Shown: positions 3,001-56,576, counted from the stretch's first letter. The stretch: 64,000 nucleotides of DNA from Adineta vaga (GCA_021613535.1 CP075494.1:11222001-11286000), one strand, 5' to 3'. Notes: generated from the sequence alone by a model not told the origin. A program made the numbers and translations.

Positions 3001-6000
3001 TAGTAAGATGTAATTACCACAGATAAATAAAACAATAAAATAAACGCAAACAACTGTACCAGCAAGGCCCAATCCACCTAGTGCACGTATACCTGTATAC
3101 AGTACTTCATTCCAATCTTCACCTGTGAGAATCTATATAAAATAGAAGTACTTCTTTTTTCCGAAATTCAAACCATTTTCGCGTTTTTCTTACTTGAAAT
3201 ACAGTGATTAATGCGCCCCAAAATGAATCAAAATTATTTCGTGGTTTCTCTTCAACGGTAAATATTTCATCAAATTTTCCTCCAAACATTTGCATGCCCA
3301 AAAGAGCAAAGATGACAATAAATAAGAACAAAAGTAACAAGAGAGATGCAATTGATTTCATTGAATTAAGTAATGATGCAACTAAATTTCTCAAAGCTGT
3401 CCAATAACGTGTTACTTTGAATACACGTAGTAGACGAACACATCGAAGCACAGATATACCCAAGGGAGGCATAAGATCTTTGAAGATGAGAACAAATTCA
3501 ATAATCGAAGCGATAACAACAAAGCAATCGAAACGATTGAAATTCGATACAAAATAGCCAGTTATACCAAGTGAATACATTTTCAAAAGCATTTCAAATG
3601 AAAATAATACCACAAAGATTCGATTGGCATATTCTAAAAGAAATCAATATATCCATAATTAACAGAAAATATCAGATGAACAATTATGAAAAAATACACA
3701 TCTATGATTAAGTGAATCTCATCTATTGCATGTAGACAATCATTAGATTTGATTAAATTATGCAAGTAACCGATGTGTATCTTGGGATTTGATGTCTACA
3801 GTTAACTTCGCACTTTCCATGTCACGTAGAAATGATCAAGAATGAATGATAAATGAGTTCGAAACGAATCCTACCTTGAGTATCGGTTAACCAATCAGGT
3901 TGTTGATAATATTCACTTGCTAAGACAACTGTATTCATCAATACAAGAATAATAACAATCCAATAAAAAGTTTGTGATTTCACCATTGTATGAATACGAC
4001 GTCGTGTATATGCATGAAAAACTCGAATATATCGTCTGAAAAGAAAATACGAGATATATCCATTGAAAATCTATGCATTCGCACGTACAATTTTTCATAA
4101 AGCCAACTACAATGTGTTTCTAGTGTTCCTTGTTTTTTTATGGGTTCTCCCGATGCATCCAAAGCAACTAAATTAATAAGAAATGAATCAAAGAATACGT
4201 TTATCTTTCGAATTTACCCTCATTTTCTGTCCCATCAGCTGTATCATTTCCAATTTCTAAAAATAAATTTCATTTTTAGAAATTCAAGTTTTAGAAATCA
4301 CGTTCGTGCATTTACCAGCTTTACGAATCCATGCCATATAGTTTCGAAAAGATTCATCGATAATTTGTATTTCTCTCAATTTTTGAAAATCACCTCTTTG
4401 TTTTGCTTTTTCTCTTTCTTTTGAAAATTCACTAAATTAAAATCAAATTTTGTTTTTTTTCAAGATTTTTTTCTTTCCCTTTTCAAAAATATACCCGCTT
4501 AGGACACCTAAGACAAGATTCATGACGAAAAAAGAACCAATAATTATCAATGAAACAAAATAAATCCAAGCCCATTCACGTCCAATAGCATCATTCATCT
4601 AAAAACATTCAAGAACAAAAGGAAATACTCGATAGAAATTAGAATCTATAACAATGTCACGATGCTCATATCGCAGTTATTTCCTAACATTCATATTCAT
4701 TTGACTTCCGATGAGAATCAAGATCAATAGCAATCAAAGACGTTCAACTCAGATTTAATTACTTCCGTATTGCATATACAAATAAGTCTTCTTTCTTAAG
4801 TACGAAGTTCTCGAAATGACTTCATTCTTTATCACATTAAACTTTTGATTTTTAGGTTCTCTTTAACATACTCGATATAAAATTGATGTCCATCCTTCCA
4901 TTGTTATACATTGAAAGACAGTTAACATTGCCAAACCAAAATTATCGAAATTAATAAATCCAAACCATGGGCCTACCCAACCGATATCTTTACATTCTTG
5001 ACCAGCAGGACATTTCCTTCCTTTTTCACCACATGGTCGAACTGGATCTTCAGGCGGCATTATAGCTAAAGAAGATATTTCTTATATTGAAATCAAAGTT
5101 GTTTTCCCTACTCGTTCCATTGTAATAACAGGTCATATGCATTTTTCCACAGAATAATTCTAAACCAATAATTGCATAGATTGTAATGACAAAAAGTACC
5201 AATAAGGCGATATGTAACAACGGTAACATTGCTCGTAGGATGGAATTCAAAACAATTTGTAAACCTTTAAAGAAAAGAAAAGTCACATATTAATTCATGT
5301 CGATAAAATATGAATTCACATGCAACAAACAAAAATTTCCTCTGACTAAATGCATAACTTATACATGCAACCATGAAATGGAATTTTTTTGAAACAAAAA
5401 TCGACACCAAACATAAAAGCAGGCAGGGATAGGATGATGATAATAACAACTAATACACTAAATAATTTATATATATTGCTTTGCTTTTTGTTTTTATTTA
5501 CTCGGTACACCATTGACAAGTTTTAATGGCCGAATAACACGAAAGGCTCGTAAAGATTTGACATCAAAACCTTGGACATTATATCGAACTAATATGACAC
5601 TCAAAAATCTAATGAATATGAAGAGGTTATCGATTTTCTTTGTTTTTTGAAATCTTTGTAATGGATTTTCCTACCCGACAACAACAATAATAAAATCAAG
5701 TAAATTCCATCCGCTCCGTAAATATGCATTCGGATGAAGACATAGACCATAGGCAATAATTTTCAGAACAACTTCAAGTGTAAATATTGCCAGAAAGATA
5801 TACTCAATTTGCTCCTATAAAGTTCAAATATCAAATTAATCAGTCAGTTTTTTGATAATAACAAAAAAAAGCAAAAAATCTCTTGAGAACGATAATCTGT
5901 GCTCAAAATTCTTTCCTAATATATTAAATCTCGATAGATTGATTAAATTCAATGTATTCTGTAATTCAATTATTTACTAGAATAGAATTTGTTGGTGTTG

Positions 6001-41291: not shown

Positions 41292-47740
<6,449 letters not shown>

Positions 47741-49424
47741 ATTTCGAAAATACAGAATGTCCTCGAAAACGGAAACTATCTCGTCAAATTGACGTTTATT
47801 CTCTTGATTTTATATCCTCTACTAACGTTTATATATTTAGAAGAAATTGCTATTTACTCGTTTGTCTATCTCTCTGCTGTTTGTTTCAAAGTTGAAGGTG
47901 TATCTCTTCCTTGTTCTTCGTCTTCCTTTTTCGTTTTTCTCTTTTGATTTTACTCATTGTATGCATAAACATTCAGCATGAGAATGACAAAAACCTTGAT
48001 CAATTCGCTATTGTTTGTCTTCTTGTTTTATTGTAATTTCAATTTTACAAAGGACAATCTTGTGGGACGATGGATTAAAAGCAAAAGAAGTGAATAGAAA
48101 AAGTGTATTATCATTTCACCTCTAGTTCATGTGAACATAAGAAAATCAGATCTCACAAACTATTTAATAGTAGATTAAAATAAATAATCAACTGTAAGTA
48201 AAGCCAACAATATGTTGGAAAGAAAATGTCCTTCCTCTTTAGATGTCATATGTTAACACGAGATATAAGGTAAATTATCAAACACTCTTAATCAATTGAA
48301 ATAAAAACTCAAAGTTTTCAGGAAGATCACTTACCATTAGAAAGAATTTGTCGAGAACGAATACTAATGTTGATCAGATATCTTTAAGTTTCGTCGTAAT
48401 ATGATCGATTGCATAAAACTACGGTGACAAACTATTTTCTCTCCTTTTTTTTTTATTCCAATGTCATATGTTGGATTGAGCAATGAAATGAAAGAGAAGA
48501 GAAAGCGAGAGAGAGAGAGAGAAAGAGACTAACACCTGATGATCATTATTGTCATGTTGCCTTGTAGAGAGCGAAAAAGGAATTAGGAAGTGTATGATGA
48601 TACACCGTTATAACTACATATATATAACAATCATGAATAAAACTAATCACTGGCGACTGTTTGAGATAAGTATAGAGATGTACATAATGAAGGCGAACTG
48701 ATTACTTAATGTAGAGGACAGAGAGTAGAATGAGAAAAGAGAAGCGCATGAATGGTGAGAACGACGATCAGTAAGGGAGGGATTAGCGAGGTGTATATAA
48801 AAATAAATAAAATCATGTTCTCACGTAATTTCTTTCTTTGATCATTTGTAAATGAACTCAAATTTCTTCTTTTAACCCTCATAAATGTTCATTAATCGAA
48901 ATGATGTAACGTATCGAAAGAGAAAAAATACAAGATATTTCTGTTGATCTCAAATTTCAAAGACATAAATAGTATTATAACAATCTTTTTATTAATTACT
49001 ACAATCATTCTAGTTCACATATTTCAAATGAAGAAGATTTCTTTTTCAATCAAATCTAATTTATTCATTAAATAAAATTTTAAAAAGAACAAAATGTCTT
49101 TATTACTATCAAATATATATATATATATATTTATATAAAAAAACAAAACAACGATTTTCTTTTTAGTAGGATTTCTGTTGACCAAACAAATGTGCTTTTT
49201 TTGTTTTCATTCACTCGGAAAGATATGAACTGCATATTTTTTCTAATCAAAAAAAGAATCAATAGCAAGGAGAAAGAAAAACAAAATACAAAACATCAAT
49301 CTATTACATTCACGAAATAGGTCAGCCTGAATTTGATTATACTTTTGTTCAAGGATGAGGATTAGAATGTTCTTCATTGAATAGATGTTTGCTATTTTTT
49401 TGTTATCAGATAAGGAAGACTAAT

Positions 49425-51230
49425 TTAAATTCGTTCGACAATATCGTTTAATGTTTTGTCAAATGTTTGTGCAGTTGATTGATGTTCATATGAATGATGA
49501 GGATGTTTAACAGCTAATAATGGTGAATGAGATTTCACAGCCATTCGTGAGATAGTATTGATTTCATGACTGATACGCATAACATATTGACGCATAAAAT
49601 CTTCAAATGTTTCCGGAGAAGAGGAAGAATCGATATGATTATTAAATAAACTAGTCGACGATAAATTCAATGTTGAAGAAATTTTATTATTCGAATGAAT
49701 TTCAAATGCATCACGATGTTTTGTATAAACATCATAAACGAATCGCCAACAATTCTCAATTTCTTCTGCTTTAGGTAAGGAAAGAGTTCCAATACCGATT
49801 TTCATATCTTTACCTATTGATGATGGTCGACAGAGAATTAAATGTATTTTCGGTATTTTGACACCATTTTCATCCGCTCGATAATAGAAACTATAATGAC
49901 GATAATAATAATATATACTGGACGGTTGCGAGAAACCATAAAGAAGACTAAATAAAAATAAGAAGAATAAAAATCTCTTTTTCTTTTTGTTTCTTTCTCA
50001 TACCTAAAGAGATATTCAAAACCATTTCTATGTAAATGATCTTCACTAACAGGTAGAATAATTCGATCAGCTGCAGTTAATGCAATTTCAGTTGCAATAT
50101 TAAATGAGGAATTTGTATCAATAAATGTCATTAATTTTATTCCACGACGTTCACCTATCTTCTGTACAAATATCCGTAAACTTTGAGTAATTGTTCGCCA
50201 TGGATTTGTATATGGACCTATTGAATTTGCACTTCGTTTATAATCCATTGCTTTACCTAATAATTCAAGTGAAGTATCACCACATAAGAGATAAACCTAG
50301 ACGAGAAAAGATAAATAATACAATGCATAGAATATGTTAATGAAATTACATTTCGAGGTAATTGATGATTAAATTTTGAAACATTAAATAGAAAAGTTCG
50401 TGGATCGACTGTTGTTGGTAATCCAACTGATGTAAATAGATCTAAATAACCGGCAATTGTACGTGGTATACGTTGTTGTCCATCGAGTATCATAGGATCT
50501 TTTTTAAGTGAACCAATTTGAGAAACATAATCATGTCCATCTTCATCATCACCTAATATCACATGAAAGAAAGAATATTTTCTACTCATTTGTCTTTTAC
50601 TTTTGATATGAAGTGTATTTTTAATTAATAAAATATAGCATAGAATCAAAATCAAATAGTATTAATTTTTAATATCATCAAACAAGTATTATACACGAGC
50701 ACATTTCTCATTAACAACATTGTTTTTTTTTCGTCTTCTTCGTCCTCCTACTTATTTTGCTAAAGGCTTTCTTTTTGTTAATCAACAATAGTTTTCTTTA
50801 GATTTTTATGGTTATTAGTCAAAGAAAAATATCGAAGATATACAAGATTTAATTGTTCGCTTCAGTCTATTCTTTTTCCTCGTTGACTTACCAAGAAAGG
50901 CATGACTGAGATCAGCTTGTGGACACATATCAATAACAAGAATTGTTTTATCGGGATTTCGATATGCATATTTAATCGCCAAATGATAAGTTAAATTAGT
51001 TTTTCCTGATCCTCCACGATTATTCCATATTGCATAGCTTCCTTCCACTGGCATTTTCTAAATAGATATAAATATCAATAGAATTATTACTGATCCATAG
51101 ATTTTCCGATAAAAATGTTTTTGAAAAAAAAAGCAGCAAACAAAAGAGAAATCAACTAGAGAAACATATTAACGCAAACCTTGCCACCTATTGGTGATGA
51201 AATAGGAGTAGTGAATGTTGTAGAAGCCAT
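49425..51230 (-). CDS. ParA/Soj/MinD-family (deviant Walker A) ATPase-like protein with 4 introns; HGT candidate
   Basis: YAIWNNRGGSGKTNL, LVIDMCPQADLS (A'), VYLLCGD, TFIDTNSSF (Walker B), ALTAADRIILPV; exons about 51180-51230, 50892-51057, 50350-50553, 50003-50297, 49425-49947. Confidence 0.88.
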
Positions 51231-54200
51231 TTTTTGTCTATGTATTGATATTGTCCTTAGTCGACGAGAGTTTGGATGAAAATGATGACAAGTAGTAGCA
51301 ATCGTTGTCTTAATTAACTATTTGTACAATATTATATCCGATCGATAGTGTGCACAACATTGACAGTGACATAGAGAAAACGACATCGGATCTCGATTTC
51401 CATTTTCTTCTCTTGACGATCGTAAAAGAAAACTCAGCGATGACGATGTCTTTATTCGACGCAAGAGAAAGAAGAGTAGAAGAAGAAGAAGAAGAAAAAA
51501 GAGAAAAGAAATCGACCGAAGTGGTCGATTGTCTTTGATTCGCTGTTCTATTCCATCATATTATTTCTAACATATATAACAAAACAAAAAAGAAACCTGG
51601 AACTAGTTTCTCTCATCTGTTCTTTTCTAATGATCTTTTACTCTTTAACATAGTTTCTCTTTCGCATAATACGATGTATTTGTCAATCCTATAGTCATTT
51701 TTTAATACATTCATATGCAAGAGATTCTCAATGGATCTTTTTTTCTTGAAAATGAAATTATATCTGAACAAAAATTCGATTGTCATTTACAGTCCATTTG
51801 AAAATATCGTTTCTATTTTTCTCGTCATCCTCTTTTTATCGTTTTTATCGAAAAAGAATAATTCAATTAATTCTTTCTTTCTTATAATCCAACGCAAGAT
51901 TTAAATGTATTCATTCTTTCATGAATATAGATCTATAGTTAGAGTGACAAAACTCGTTATTTTCATTGAATACAAGTAGACTTGTGAACTAACTTTAATA
52001 TACAATTATGCTAATGATCGTTGACGAGTTCCGAACAAGATTGAACGCGTTTCTTCTTCTTCTTCGTCTTCTTCTTTTTCACAAGTTCAGATGACATTAG
52101 CAAAGAAAAGAATAGACAACAAGGGAATATATCGGATATTGACATGGAAAAAGAAACTATAAATAAAATTCTTTTTACTCTCTCTCTATATATATAAATA
52201 TATATATATTAAAATTAATGATGACATAACAAAACAACGAAATGTAATGATTAACTATGCGCACAGAGAAGAAAATGAAAGAAGAATCTTCATACCTATT
52301 CAGACGAAATCTTTCGTTGACTTGGTTCATGTGACATGGAGAAAATCATATTTAAAAGGACAATTAAAAAATCAATGTGATACTTCCGGTATTGTTGATA
52401 TGCTCGAATTTCCGTTAATGATCATATTAAACTTATCTCCAATAGGAAACAAAGACAAATGAATATTCTTGTTTTACTAATTTTCTCGTTAGCTTTTTCT
52501 GTCTTCTTTACGATCAAATAAATACAAAGAACACAAACTGACAAAAACAATAAATAATCAAGTAATAACGACAATGAGATGAAAAAATAACTCGAATGAG
52601 AATTTCTTTTCCTCTATCCTACTAACAGAAACAAACAGAGCGACTTTTTCTTGTTCTTTTCATTTCTAACTCACATTATATACATTCTCAGCAAGCAAAT
52701 CAATTCCTATGATCGAATAAAGTAATGTGCTTCCTTGTCATTGATGTTGAAACAAAGACCCCTCCATAAGCACAAAAAAAGAAAAACGATCGGTAATGAA
52801 ATACTCCAAACTATACAGAGATCATAGTTTAAAAAGTATTTGACGAGTATACAGTCGTTGTCTATTTACACTAAGATCGTTTTTTTTATTATTTTGAAGC
52901 AAACAAAACTAGAGGACATAAATTTTCTTGACACGAGATATTCTTAGCCTGGTTATCTTCTTTGATAATCTTTCTTTTATAGTTCTTGCTTCTTGTTTTT
53001 CTATTTTTTAATACATTCGCTCTCTGATAACAACAAACAATCAGCACCACTTCTCTTCATTTTTCTCTTTGACACAAACCGATTTTGTCAGTCAATCATC
53101 AATGTTTATACTAACACAAAAAAAAAATCTTTAATATATTTCGAAATGATATTTATTTGATAGATTAAATCTGAGATAATGTTCTAGGAGCAGATCAAGA
53201 AAAACGCAAGCTTCAATTATCACATTCGCTGCACACATTTTCTCAAGACCACTTGATAGAACCATCAATCAGCAAACATCCATATTATTAGAATAGGCAA
53301 AAAAAAAGCGGAGGAATAACGTCAAGCGAAGAAGAGAAAAAAAAACTGTCACAAACTGGAAGTAATTGAAAGAGGAAAATATCGTCGAGAAAAAAACGAA
53401 GTCGATGATTTCTATGATGAACGGAAATGGTTGTCGATAGAACGGTACAAACTCAGGAATGACAATACATCAATGAATTTCTCACATCATTGATGAATCA
53501 ATTGATAAATTATTGAACTTATCTATAGATTAATACTTTCCAACTCATCATTAATAATAGAATTATGACGTTAAATAGAAAGAAAAACCGTACAATATAA
53601 ACGTTGATTTCTATTTGAATAAATGACATTGTTTTTCGATATCGGAAGCCATAAAAAAAGAAAAATGACCTTGATCGACAAATGTCAAATTCATTCACAC
53701 AATGATATGATGTGCTTATTTTTTATATCGTCTTCATCTTTTTTTACTTTACAATCATATAAAATAACAACTCACGATCGAATATGTATTATATTTTTGA
53801 AAATTTTTACTCATTCTCTTTCGGCATTTCCTTATTATTTCTACAGCGAACGAACACATTTTATACCTACGTGTGTTAAAAAAGGAAGAAAGAACTGAAC
53901 GACTCACTATAGTCCCTCGATATGAAATGCTTGTGTTTATTTAAGAACTGCGGTTATTAAATCCCTATTTCTATCAAAACATGATTTTTGTCGAAATGAA
54001 ATTCCCATAGGAAAACATTGAATACATATTCACACATATAACATCAAATTAATCACTTTTAATATCCATACTAGACGCAAAATTTGTTAATAAGAATTTT
54101 GTTTTTTTCAAACATTTGTTGAATTCTTACTTTATTCTTCTCTATCCATAAATTTCATCAACAGAATAATTATTTTATTTTAATATCCTCTGGGATTATA

Positions 54201-55592: not shown

Positions 55593-56576
55593 CTATTTCT
55601 CTCTTAAAAAAGCTTGTATTGCATAAATAACTGGGTTTGAATGTTCAATAAGTAACATATGTGTAGCGCCAGGAATAATGGTTAACGAAGAATTTTTGTA
55701 TAATTGATGATAATGATACGCATTATTCACAGGCACTAACGTATCGTTATCACCCCAAATGATTAGAATAGGTATATTTAATGTCGCAATAACTGCAACA
55801 GATTTCAATGAAGCTTCGAAATCAAAATTAGTTACTGTCGAAAATAAAGCGCGTAAATATCCCGGATGTTGTTGCCAACCTGATCGAAATAATCTTTTAT
55901 ATTCTTTGTATTTATCATCATCAGGAAAAGCCCATTGTAAGCGATCTTTTTTCTCATTACCACGTTGCATAATAAACTTGAAAAGCATTGGACCAAGAAG
56001 AGGAATAGATAAGATAAAGAAGAAGATTTTCAGTGGTTTTACCAGACCAAGTCCACCAGAACAACAAAGAATAAGTTTCGACACTTTTGATGGATATAAT
56101 TCAGTAAAACGTTGTATAATTGCTCCACCCATGCTAACACCATATAGATTATATTTTTCATGTGGAAGATCTAATGCATATAATAATTCGGCTAACTGAC
56201 AAACGAAAATATCAATATCCATTGGAACATCAGGAGAATCTGACCAACCACGACCATAAAGATCAAAAACTAAACATGATTGATTATCGTTAACAAGTGC
56301 TTGAAAAATATCTTGCCACATTTCCATCGGTGTTGAATAACCATGAACAAATATATTTAATGGCGTTGCTGAGGCAGATGATGAAGAATGGTAAATATAA
56401 TGAACAGTACCAAATGAAAGTTCAATAAATTGATCACGACCCATTCTTGTTATAGGTATAGTAGAAGTTCGATCATATGAACGTGATAATCGACCACTTT
56501 GAAAAGCAAGACGATCATATAATTTAAAAAATACAATATAAACCACAAGAATCAAAAATAGTACGAGTAGAAACAT
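55593..56576 (-). CDS. Intronless alpha/beta-hydrolase with N-terminal membrane anchor; HGT candidate
   Basis: Hydrophobic N-terminus, FVHGYS, FDLYGRGWSD, GVSMGG nucleophile, IWGDNDTLVP acid, GATH His. Confidence 0.88.
   Translation of the reverse strand: MFLLVLFLILVVYIVFFKLYDRLAFQSGRLSRSYDRTSTIPITRMGRDQFIELSFGTVHYIYHSSSSASATPLNIFVHGYSTPMEMWQDIFQALVNDNQSCLVFDLYGRGWSDSPDVPMDIDIFVCQLAELLYALDLPHEKYNLYGVSMGGAIIQRFTELYPSKVSKLILCCSGGLGLVKPLKIFFFILSIPLLGPMLFKFIMQRGNEKKDRLQWAFPDDDKYKEYKRLFRSGWQQHPGYLRALFSTVTNFDFEASLKSVAVIATLNIPILIIWGDNDTLVPVNNAYHYHQLYKNSSLTIIPGATHMLLIEHSNPVIYAIQAFLREK

Follow-up and report, generated by a model that had tools for sequence, protein, structure and literature searches.

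In prokaryotes, ATPases of the ParA type arrange DNA and cargo; from eukaryotes they are otherwise known mainly for organelle-related or Fe-S roles. Here we describe a ParA-like gene of the rotifer Adineta vaga, located on the minus strand (51445..49166) of a 64,000-nucleotide stretch of its genome (GCA_021613535.1, CP075494.1:11222001-11286000; hereafter the window, with positions counted from its first letter), in which the signature lysine of the Walker A motif is replaced by arginine. The closest described systems come from a recent preprint on ParA proteins (Li, Burroughs, Aravind, bioRxiv 10.64898/2026.10.19.760177, 22 October 2026), which defines a "conflict" branch, ConB1, made up of ParA-effector systems, with HEPN among the effectors, together with standalone transposon and prophage lineages (Standalone-Transposon-Prophage, STP). 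Two clades of eukaryotic standalone ParA, Euk1 and Euk2, with rotifers among them, are placed there as sister to the STP lineages (10.64898/2026.10.19.760177). The same preprint proposes a role against selfish genetic elements, which is the only proposal on record for the cellular role (10.64898/2026.10.19.760177).

The family of the A. vaga gene fits this description of ConB1-related eukaryotic clades, with the choice between Euk1 and Euk2 left unassigned. Like the Euk1, Euk2 and STP proteins of ConB1 as described there, the gene encodes a standalone ParA of a kind found in rotifers, other metazoans and secondary-plastid algae, and its bacterial relatives likewise stand in prophage or defence contexts or are paired with HEPN. 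The gene carries marks that the preprint gives for PriB1, namely an Asn starting Walker A (NN-R-GG) and a Gln two positions past the sensor (D-M-C-P-Q), whereas the Val that marks the ConB1 Walker A, present in 80% of the wider family, is Ser or Thr in rotifers. The preprint also mentions rotifer expansions where the A. vaga family has two copies only, and a replacement of the first (signature) Lys by Arg or His is absent from the text consulted, where the Arg under discussion takes the place of the second Lys, in ConB2. Because this preprint already names rotifers (10.64898/2026.10.19.760177) and homologues occur in corals, Chromera and Phalansterium, the initial annotation, made from the window's sequence alone, went too far in suggesting a potentially undescribed eukaryotic system. 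Known before were the family itself, its C-terminal module and its occurrence in rotifers and other eukaryotes; new in detail are that the gene is common to monogononts and bdelloids, that the whole rotifer clade has Arg or His for the signature Lys along with a set of further pocket changes, and that the two A. vaga copies are each spliced and under strong constraint. The best overall explanation, to which we give a probability of about 0.7, is that a rotifer ancestor acquired a standalone ParA/Soj-fold NTPase that would now act as a nucleotide switch or scaffold with Arg in place of Lys.

Among solved structures, the best match to the family profile was DIP2308 of Corynebacterium diphtheriae (3pg5; 1.6e-22 over ~200 residues), a 361-residue protein of similar length with an NNKGGVGKT-type P-loop and a DxDPQ sensor, which differs in keeping the signature Lys, in being an uncharacterised structural-genomics protein and in its Foldseek rank below Soj and ParA for the rotifer model. 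Chromosomal and plasmid ParA and Soj proteins (for example Helicobacter pylori Soj 6iub/8jml, Thermus Soj 2bek) have the same fold as the A. vaga family (TM-score by target 0.63-0.75), arrange the deviant Walker A alike and likewise carry the aspartates of Walker A′ and Walker B, but identity is ~14%, the family has an extra insert between sensor and Walker B (exon 3) and a longer C-terminal helical module, and the rotifer protein has Arg for the signature Lys, with no ParB partner to be expected. In ParA-type dimers this Lys reaches the ATP bound by the neighbouring monomer and touches its beta-gamma phosphate, and McdA of beta-cyanobacteria (6nop/6non) is a natural family member that has no Lys at the Walker A signature position and still forms an ATP-sandwich dimer, the Lys being supplied from elsewhere in the protein (PMC8684754). 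McdA, which was among the top structural matches, has Ser at the signature position and draws its Lys from position 151 in the C-terminal half, whereas in rotifers this very position is still occupied by a basic residue, Arg or His.

Gene structure, copies and constraint

Raw sequence and frame-by-frame translation revealed five exons and four introns (GT..AG in 4/4; Table 1) that encode a ParA/Soj-fold protein of ~410 residues. The limits read from sequence place the first exon from 51445, or its coding part from 51230, to 51180, followed by 51057-50892, 50552-50350, 50296-50004 and a last coding segment at 49947-49425 that leads into the 3′ untranslated region (UTR). As splicing evidence we aligned contigs of public runs (given here as codes) to the window, and their pieces map to 49166-49947, 50004-50296, 50350-50552, 50892-51057 and 51180-51445. 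Single contigs from X1 and X2, both of study P1, and from X17, of study P8, match the predicted exons exactly and leave out just the predicted introns, and a contig of run X5 (study P2) contains the last two exons only. Transcription and splicing of the gene thus follow the prediction.

Searching the whole genome (100.8 Mb, six contigs) with the single exons and with profiles revealed one paralogue only, on contig C2, whose translation is identical to the NCBI hypothetical protein I4U23_007926 of Adineta vaga (P0299). Identity between this copy and the window gene over exons 2 to 5 is 93%, 91%, 88% and 69%, with a longer S/T/P-rich linker in the C2 copy, and reading frames are intact throughout in both. 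The ratio of nonsynonymous to synonymous substitution (dN/dS), calculated between the two copies by the Nei-Gojobori method per exon and then summed, is 0.157 overall at dS 0.78, with values of 0.06-0.12 in the ATPase core exons, and both copies are under purifying selection. The initial annotation had read ParA-family motifs in order over five exons with four spliceosomal introns, and spliced transcript contigs from three studies bear out both that structure and the expression of the gene; the low dN/dS likewise shows that it does not evolve neutrally.

The start of the protein is less settled. Most of exon 1 is 5′ UTR, and the leader contains four upstream ATGs with short open reading frames (ORFs) (51231-51445, minus strand), and an in-frame ATG at 51230 would add an 18-residue, S/T-rich N-terminal extension ending ..SSPIGGKK ahead of the conserved MP.EGSY. 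Similar ..SSPxGKK extensions are found in annotated Rotaria and Adineta steineri orthologues, and given these we no longer hold firmly to a reading of exon 1 as purely UTR. The extension is not conserved in the C2 copy, and other models begin at the Met at 51054. Because the bdelloid extensions resemble the 51230 version, yet the C2 copy does not conserve it, translation may start at either 51230 or the Met at 51054. Part of the 5′ leader (145 nt, 74% identity) is conserved upstream of the C2 copy, and this partial conservation together with the upstream ATGs hints that translation might be controlled through the leader.

Fold, motifs and the replaced signature lysine

Alignment of the family revealed homology along the whole length, through WNNKGGVGKT, DxCPQAN, an insert of ~70 residues, LLCGD, FIDTNPSF, ADDxS, LPKIHLxIxNR and the C-terminal helices. 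The C-terminal helical module ends in a conserved L..LV..L across the family, and in rotifers a variable low-complexity linker separates it from the core. Because the alignment extends over the whole length of the family, the module is a trait of all bacterial and eukaryotic members and not the extension peculiar to the A. vaga gene for which it was first taken. The family profile matched solved Soj/ParA structures at ~1e-14, behind 3pg5.

For the fold we built an AlphaFold2 model (monomer) of the A. steineri orthologue P0047 with 87 family sequences, this protein being 92-94% identical to the A. vaga window protein in exons 2-4 and 74% in exon 5. The model has a predicted local distance difference test score (pLDDT) of 88.7 and a predicted template modelling score (pTM) of 0.89, with residues 316-333 alone disordered. 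In Foldseek it matched ParA, Soj and McdA best (probability 1.00; TM-score by target 0.63-0.75), and the top 40 are of ParA, Soj, McdA or FleN type throughout. The predicted three-dimensional fold is that of ParA/Soj.

Of the motifs, Walker A and A′ lie in exon 2, Walker B in exon 4 and a degenerate [NT]xxx strand in exon 5. Both aspartates, D42 and D182 in P0047 numbering, are present in the A. vaga gene; in alignment A1 both are invariant, and in alignment A2 D182 is so again and D42 nearly so, while the second Asp of DxD is Cys family-wide (DxCPQ). Exon 2 alone scored above the Pfam gathering score for AAA_31 (PF13614; 30.0 bits against 27) and CbiA (PF01656; 28.3 against 25.4), as did the full-length orthologue P0047 (45.7 and 30.9 bits). 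The ParA/MinD signature KGGxGK[ST] is not matched to the letter, since the gene reads RGGSGKT, with the second, catalytic Lys and the Thr present; descent from the ParA/MinD clade of SIMIBI P-loop NTPases is clear despite this mismatch. No NCBIfam model came near its cut-off in the family scans. Because a PADLOC scan gave marginal P-loop matches to PDC-M28B only, the ParA-like family is not a catalogued defence protein.

The replacement of the signature Lys by Arg, also reported in the initial annotation, proved real and conserved across rotifers. Among the readable P-loops of the first searches this position is Lys in 144 sequences, all non-rotifer, and Arg in 11, all of them (11/11) rotifer-type, and the further rotifer sequences have Arg throughout except for two metagenome sequences with His. 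These two, P0294 and P0295 of the rotifer-type clade, read WNNHGG. The Arg codon is CGT or CGA in rotifer-type sequences, two steps from a Lys codon. Other changes of the rotifer clade at highly conserved family sites are V16S/T, N48D, P185S, Y190S/L, S211H and loss of the [NT]xxx Asn, while every rotifer sequence seen retains the catalytic Lys, the Thr/Ser of GK[ST] and the aspartates of sensor and Walker B. Because the rotifer sequences form one fully supported clade (100% SH-aLRT) on a long stem, the pocket was remodelled once, early, and then frozen in rotifers. By analogy with McdA, Arg or His at the signature position could plausibly do the same job as Lys with different kinetics.

Table 1. 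Features of the ParA-like gene in the window, in order of transcription for exons and introns, then motifs and protein regions.
Feature	Position	Strand	Basis
Exon 1: 5′ UTR with four upstream ATGs and a possible start ATG at 51230 (17 codons, S/T-rich)	51180..51445	-	Contig pieces reach 51445
Intron 1, 122 nt, GT..AG	51058..51179	-	Joint 51057/51180 in X1 and X2 contigs
Exon 2: conserved Met at 51054, P-loop, Walker A′	50892..51057	-	Translation; AAA_31 6e-7, CbiA 2e-6; contig pieces
Intron 2, 339 nt	50553..50891	-	Joint in X1, X2 and X17
Exon 3: family-specific insert, sensor to Walker B	50350..50552	-	Translation; 91% identity to C2 copy
Intron 3, 53 nt	50297..50349	-	Joint in X1, X2 and X17
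Exon 4: Walker B region	50004..50296	-	AAA_31 profile positions 122-160; 88% identity to C2 copy
Intron 4, 56 nt	49948..50003	-	One contig record passes directly from 50004 to 49947
Exon 5: end of ATPase core, linker, C-terminal helices, stop TAA 49427-49425, 3′ UTR to ~49166	49166..49947	-	Translation and contigs
Deviant Walker A NNRGGSGKT; Arg codon CGT 51018-51016 at the signature Lys site	50998..51024	-	Sequence; Lys in all non-rotifer relatives
Walker A′/sensor IDMCPQAD; Asp kept; family form DxCPQ	50911..50934	-	Translation and alignment
Walker B LMTFIDTN; Asp kept; following family Pro is Ser in rotifers	50111..50134	-	Alignment
Strand KIHLILCR; family Asn (94% N) of the [NT]xxx base-contact motif replaced	49827..49850	-	Alignment; motif definition from the preprint (10.64898/2026.10.19.760177)
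Variable S/T/N-rich linker; C2 copy ~40 residues longer here	49614..49694	-	Two-copy alignment; matching P0047 model residues 316-333 with pLDDT <50
C-terminal helical module, conserved, ending ..FDKTLNDIVERI	49428..49613	-	Homologous to the C-terminus of bacterial members; modelled helices 341-399

Spread and origin of the family

Homologue searches used the exons as separate references and then orthologous proteins taken from the matches. Sequence searches of the PDB with single exons returned nothing useful, and a word search with exon 5 returned rotifer fragments only, owing to its length window; full-length relatives were recovered upon re-query with P0013 and then P0275. Orthologues are present in Adineta steineri, A. 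ricciae, Rotaria species and Didymodactylos carnosus, and a second, more divergent group is monogonont, comprising Brachionus calyciflorus and B. plicatilis (the latter annotated "chromosome partitioning ATPase"), such that rotifer members already carry ParA-like annotations in public databases. Because Brachionus and bdelloids both carry family members, the gene is older than the monogonont-bdelloid split.

An exhaustive protein search with A. steineri P0047 revealed 659 relatives at E <=1e-3 and 256 at <=1e-10, and the named non-rotifer relatives include Chromera velia, two corals (Acropora millepora and Porites evermanni), Phalansterium, which is an amoebozoan, and a Planctomycetota metagenome-assembled genome. 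With one genome per species scanned, at least 342 bacterial or archaeal loci hold a relative (30-39% identity over ~260-310 residues), in nearly every phylum, yet patchily. The bacterial genes encode 340-360 residues and are mostly standalone, with neighbours that include a GmrSD restriction gene, an Mrr nuclease and a phage tail gene. At nine cyanobacterial, poribacterial and proteobacterial loci (among them L033, with HEPN at 5025-5624, L036, L037, L039, L041, L065, L075 and L080) a 200-residue HEPN_RiboL-PSP protein (PF18735, 1e-6) lies directly downstream, within ~10 nt, and the pair looks like a two-gene module of the kind that the preprint calls ParA-effector systems. A genome search found the HEPN_RiboL-PSP family absent from the rotifer genome. 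The bacterial relatives examined had no ParB neighbour, and no genome-wide ParB search was made in A. vaga; operon logic does not hold in an animal genome, and since bacterial members are standalone or paired with a HEPN RNase, a ParB is not to be expected as partner.

Quick maximum-likelihood trees of 130 and 64 rows, with other ParA proteins as outgroup and branch support by the Shimodaira-Hasegawa-like approximate likelihood ratio test (SH-aLRT), both placed the rotifer sequences in a single clade (100% SH-aLRT) on a stem of ~0.95 substitutions per site. A single clade takes in every bacterial member sampled (97% with 130 rows, 93% with 64); outside it lie, in an unresolved comb, the rotifer and coral clades, Chromera and several metagenome lineages of eukaryote-like type, with Phalansterium placed within the bacteria-rich clade. 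Intron positions also differ among relatives: L012 (203-1040), a Brachionus-like locus, has no introns over its first ~280 codons, and in L010 (4112-4480), a GC-richer (44%) metagenome contig with a rotifer-type (NNRGG) relative, exons 2 and 3 are fused in an open frame that lacks intron 2, whose counterpart in the C2 copy is ~60 nt. Because of these differences, stepwise intron gain in the Adineta lineage would fit the data.

A bacterial ancestry is likely on these comparisons, with introns gained afterwards, because bacteria have the family in abundance and eukaryotes only in patches and because L012 is intronless over ~280 codons and L010 is without intron 2; the acquisition is likely old, because the gene is common to monogononts and bdelloids. 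The preprint similarly infers two transfers from bacteria to eukaryotes (Li, Burroughs, Aravind, bioRxiv 10.64898/2026.10.19.760177). Of the old horizontal acquisition put forward in the initial annotation, its age stands and a bacterial origin is likely, while the donor and the number of transfers are left unsettled by the quick trees.

Elsewhere in the window, tandem EGF-like repeats lie at 44174-44996 (minus strand), ~4.5 kb downstream of the ParA-like gene. Because an EGF gene is also found near the orthologue on a 79.6 kb metagenome contig, conserved synteny of the two genes is suggested. At 55593-56576 (minus strand) there is an unbroken ORF of 327 codons that resembles an alpha/beta hydrolase (HG..., GxSxG-like GVSMGG), which is unusually intron-free for the A. 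vaga genome and could be another foreign gene.

Mechanism, alternatives and meaning

The explanation that we favour begins with a standalone ParA/Soj-fold P-loop NTPase of a patchy bacterial family, whose members occur alone, in prophages, in defence islands or beside a HEPN RNase. A rotifer ancestor would have acquired it before the monogonont/bdelloid split, with introns gained later, purifying selection since then and two old duplicates in A. vaga. Because the catalytic Lys and the Thr of the P-loop and the aspartates of both Walker A′ and Walker B are intact, the protein is predicted to have retained binding of nucleotide and Mg2+, and it probably still forms a nucleotide-sandwich dimer, in which the Arg (rarely His) at the signature site would reach the partner's beta-gamma phosphate in the manner of an arginine finger. 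This Arg, the loss of the base-contact Asn and the nearby Ser-to-His and Pro-to-Ser changes may together alter kinetics or nucleotide preference, and the protein would serve as a nucleotide-dependent switch or scaffold that binds a partner surface via its conserved C-terminal helices. From the residues kept and lost, a nucleotide-dependent dimerising switch is the mechanism that seems best supported, with a pseudo-enzyme scaffold as its main rival.

Several points weigh against this explanation. The rotifer clade sits in a polytomy with Chromera, corals and the bacteria-rich clade (55-93% SH-aLRT in the quick trees), such that neither the donor nor the number of transfers is fixed, and the structure is a predicted monomer of the A. 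steineri orthologue, not the A. vaga protein or a dimer. With the signature Lys, base-contact Asn and conserved Ser all gone, hydrolysis or dimerisation could have been lost and not retuned. Biochemistry is not known for any family member, the nearest solved structure, 3pg5, being itself uncharacterised, and a role in defence is conjecture carried over from bacterial gene neighbourhoods.

The alternative of a pseudo-enzyme scaffold holds that ATP-driven dimerisation or hydrolysis was lost and that the protein was kept only as a nucleotide-bound or nucleotide-free adaptor. It would account for K13R, V16S/T, N48D, P185S, S211H and the [NT]xxx Asn having changed together on a long rotifer stem branch and for His being tolerated at the signature position in two sequences, but GK[ST] and both aspartates are kept in every rotifer sequence seen, dN/dS is lowest (0.06-0.12) in the core exons, and with Arg as with His the signature position keeps a side chain that is basic or can donate a proton. 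We consider the scaffold unlikely, if still the main competitor. Quite unlikely, in our judgement, is vertical inheritance from an early eukaryote or animal with many losses in place of a transfer into rotifers. The quick trees lend it something, with the rotifer clade lying outside the clade of all sampled bacteria and among eukaryote-type lineages such as Chromera and corals, and so does the presence of the family in corals. Set against it are the abundance of the family across bacteria and its very patchy occurrence in eukaryotes, the failure of the named eukaryotes to group (four changes are required on the tree), the intron-poor L012 and L010 loci, which fit intron gain after acquisition, and the two bacterial transfers inferred in the preprint (10.64898/2026.10.19.760177).

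That the gene is instead a diverged ordinary eukaryotic SIMIBI ATPase (NUBP1/2, NUBPL, Get3/TRC40 or plastid-type MinD) we regard as highly improbable. Weak Pfam matches in the P-loop are what such a reading can point to, but they stay below the gathering score for exon 2, at 12.6 bits against a cut-off of 27.1 for PF10609 (NUBP/Mrp; unlisted for P0047) and 10.9 bits against 24.3 for PF02374 (Get3/ArsA). The family profile reaches Get3 at ~5e-7 over some 65 residues (Get3/NifH 1e-7 to 1e-4, P-loop only), against 1.6e-22 for 3pg5 and ~1e-14 for Soj, the Foldseek top 40 are uniformly of ParA/Soj/McdA/FleN type, and NUBP/Mrp-type genes of a clearly different family are found at separate loci (C5:8289283-8289411 and C2:13352626-13353048). 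On these grounds the NUBP/Get3 identity was rejected, and the ParA/Soj-type assignment of the initial annotation was upheld. The NUBP/Mrp-type genes themselves read SGKGGVGKTT with a C-terminal Cys pair and, as the ParA-like gene is, form a C5/C2 pair, which makes them useful internal comparators. Bacterial contamination or a decaying pseudogene has a negligible chance of being right: nothing was found in its favour, and we rejected both given four spliceosomal introns that are removed in transcripts, a location inside a chromosome-scale contig of more than 11 Mb beside the EGF-repeat gene, and intact frames in both copies with dN/dS 0.16.

A bolder extension of the favoured explanation, which we consider doubtful, would be an animal nuclear system derived from a bacterial conflict-type ParA, in which a sandwich dimer with an Arg or His finger binds DNA or chromatin and either polices foreign or mobile DNA or positions cargo. 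If true, this would make it the first machine of the ParA type, whether for surface gradients or for DNA interception, to operate in animal cells, and it would have been retained from before the monogonont/bdelloid split. An animal phylum has retained, under strong constraint, a ParA of the prophage or defence type whose family-defining residue is now Arg, and this offers a natural experiment on the role of the signature lysine; on the acquisition that we favour, the foreign gene is older than the bdelloid-specific wave of gene transfer. Brachionus and A. vaga provide a tractable case in which to test the recent proposal that eukaryotes borrowed ParA proteins against selfish elements.

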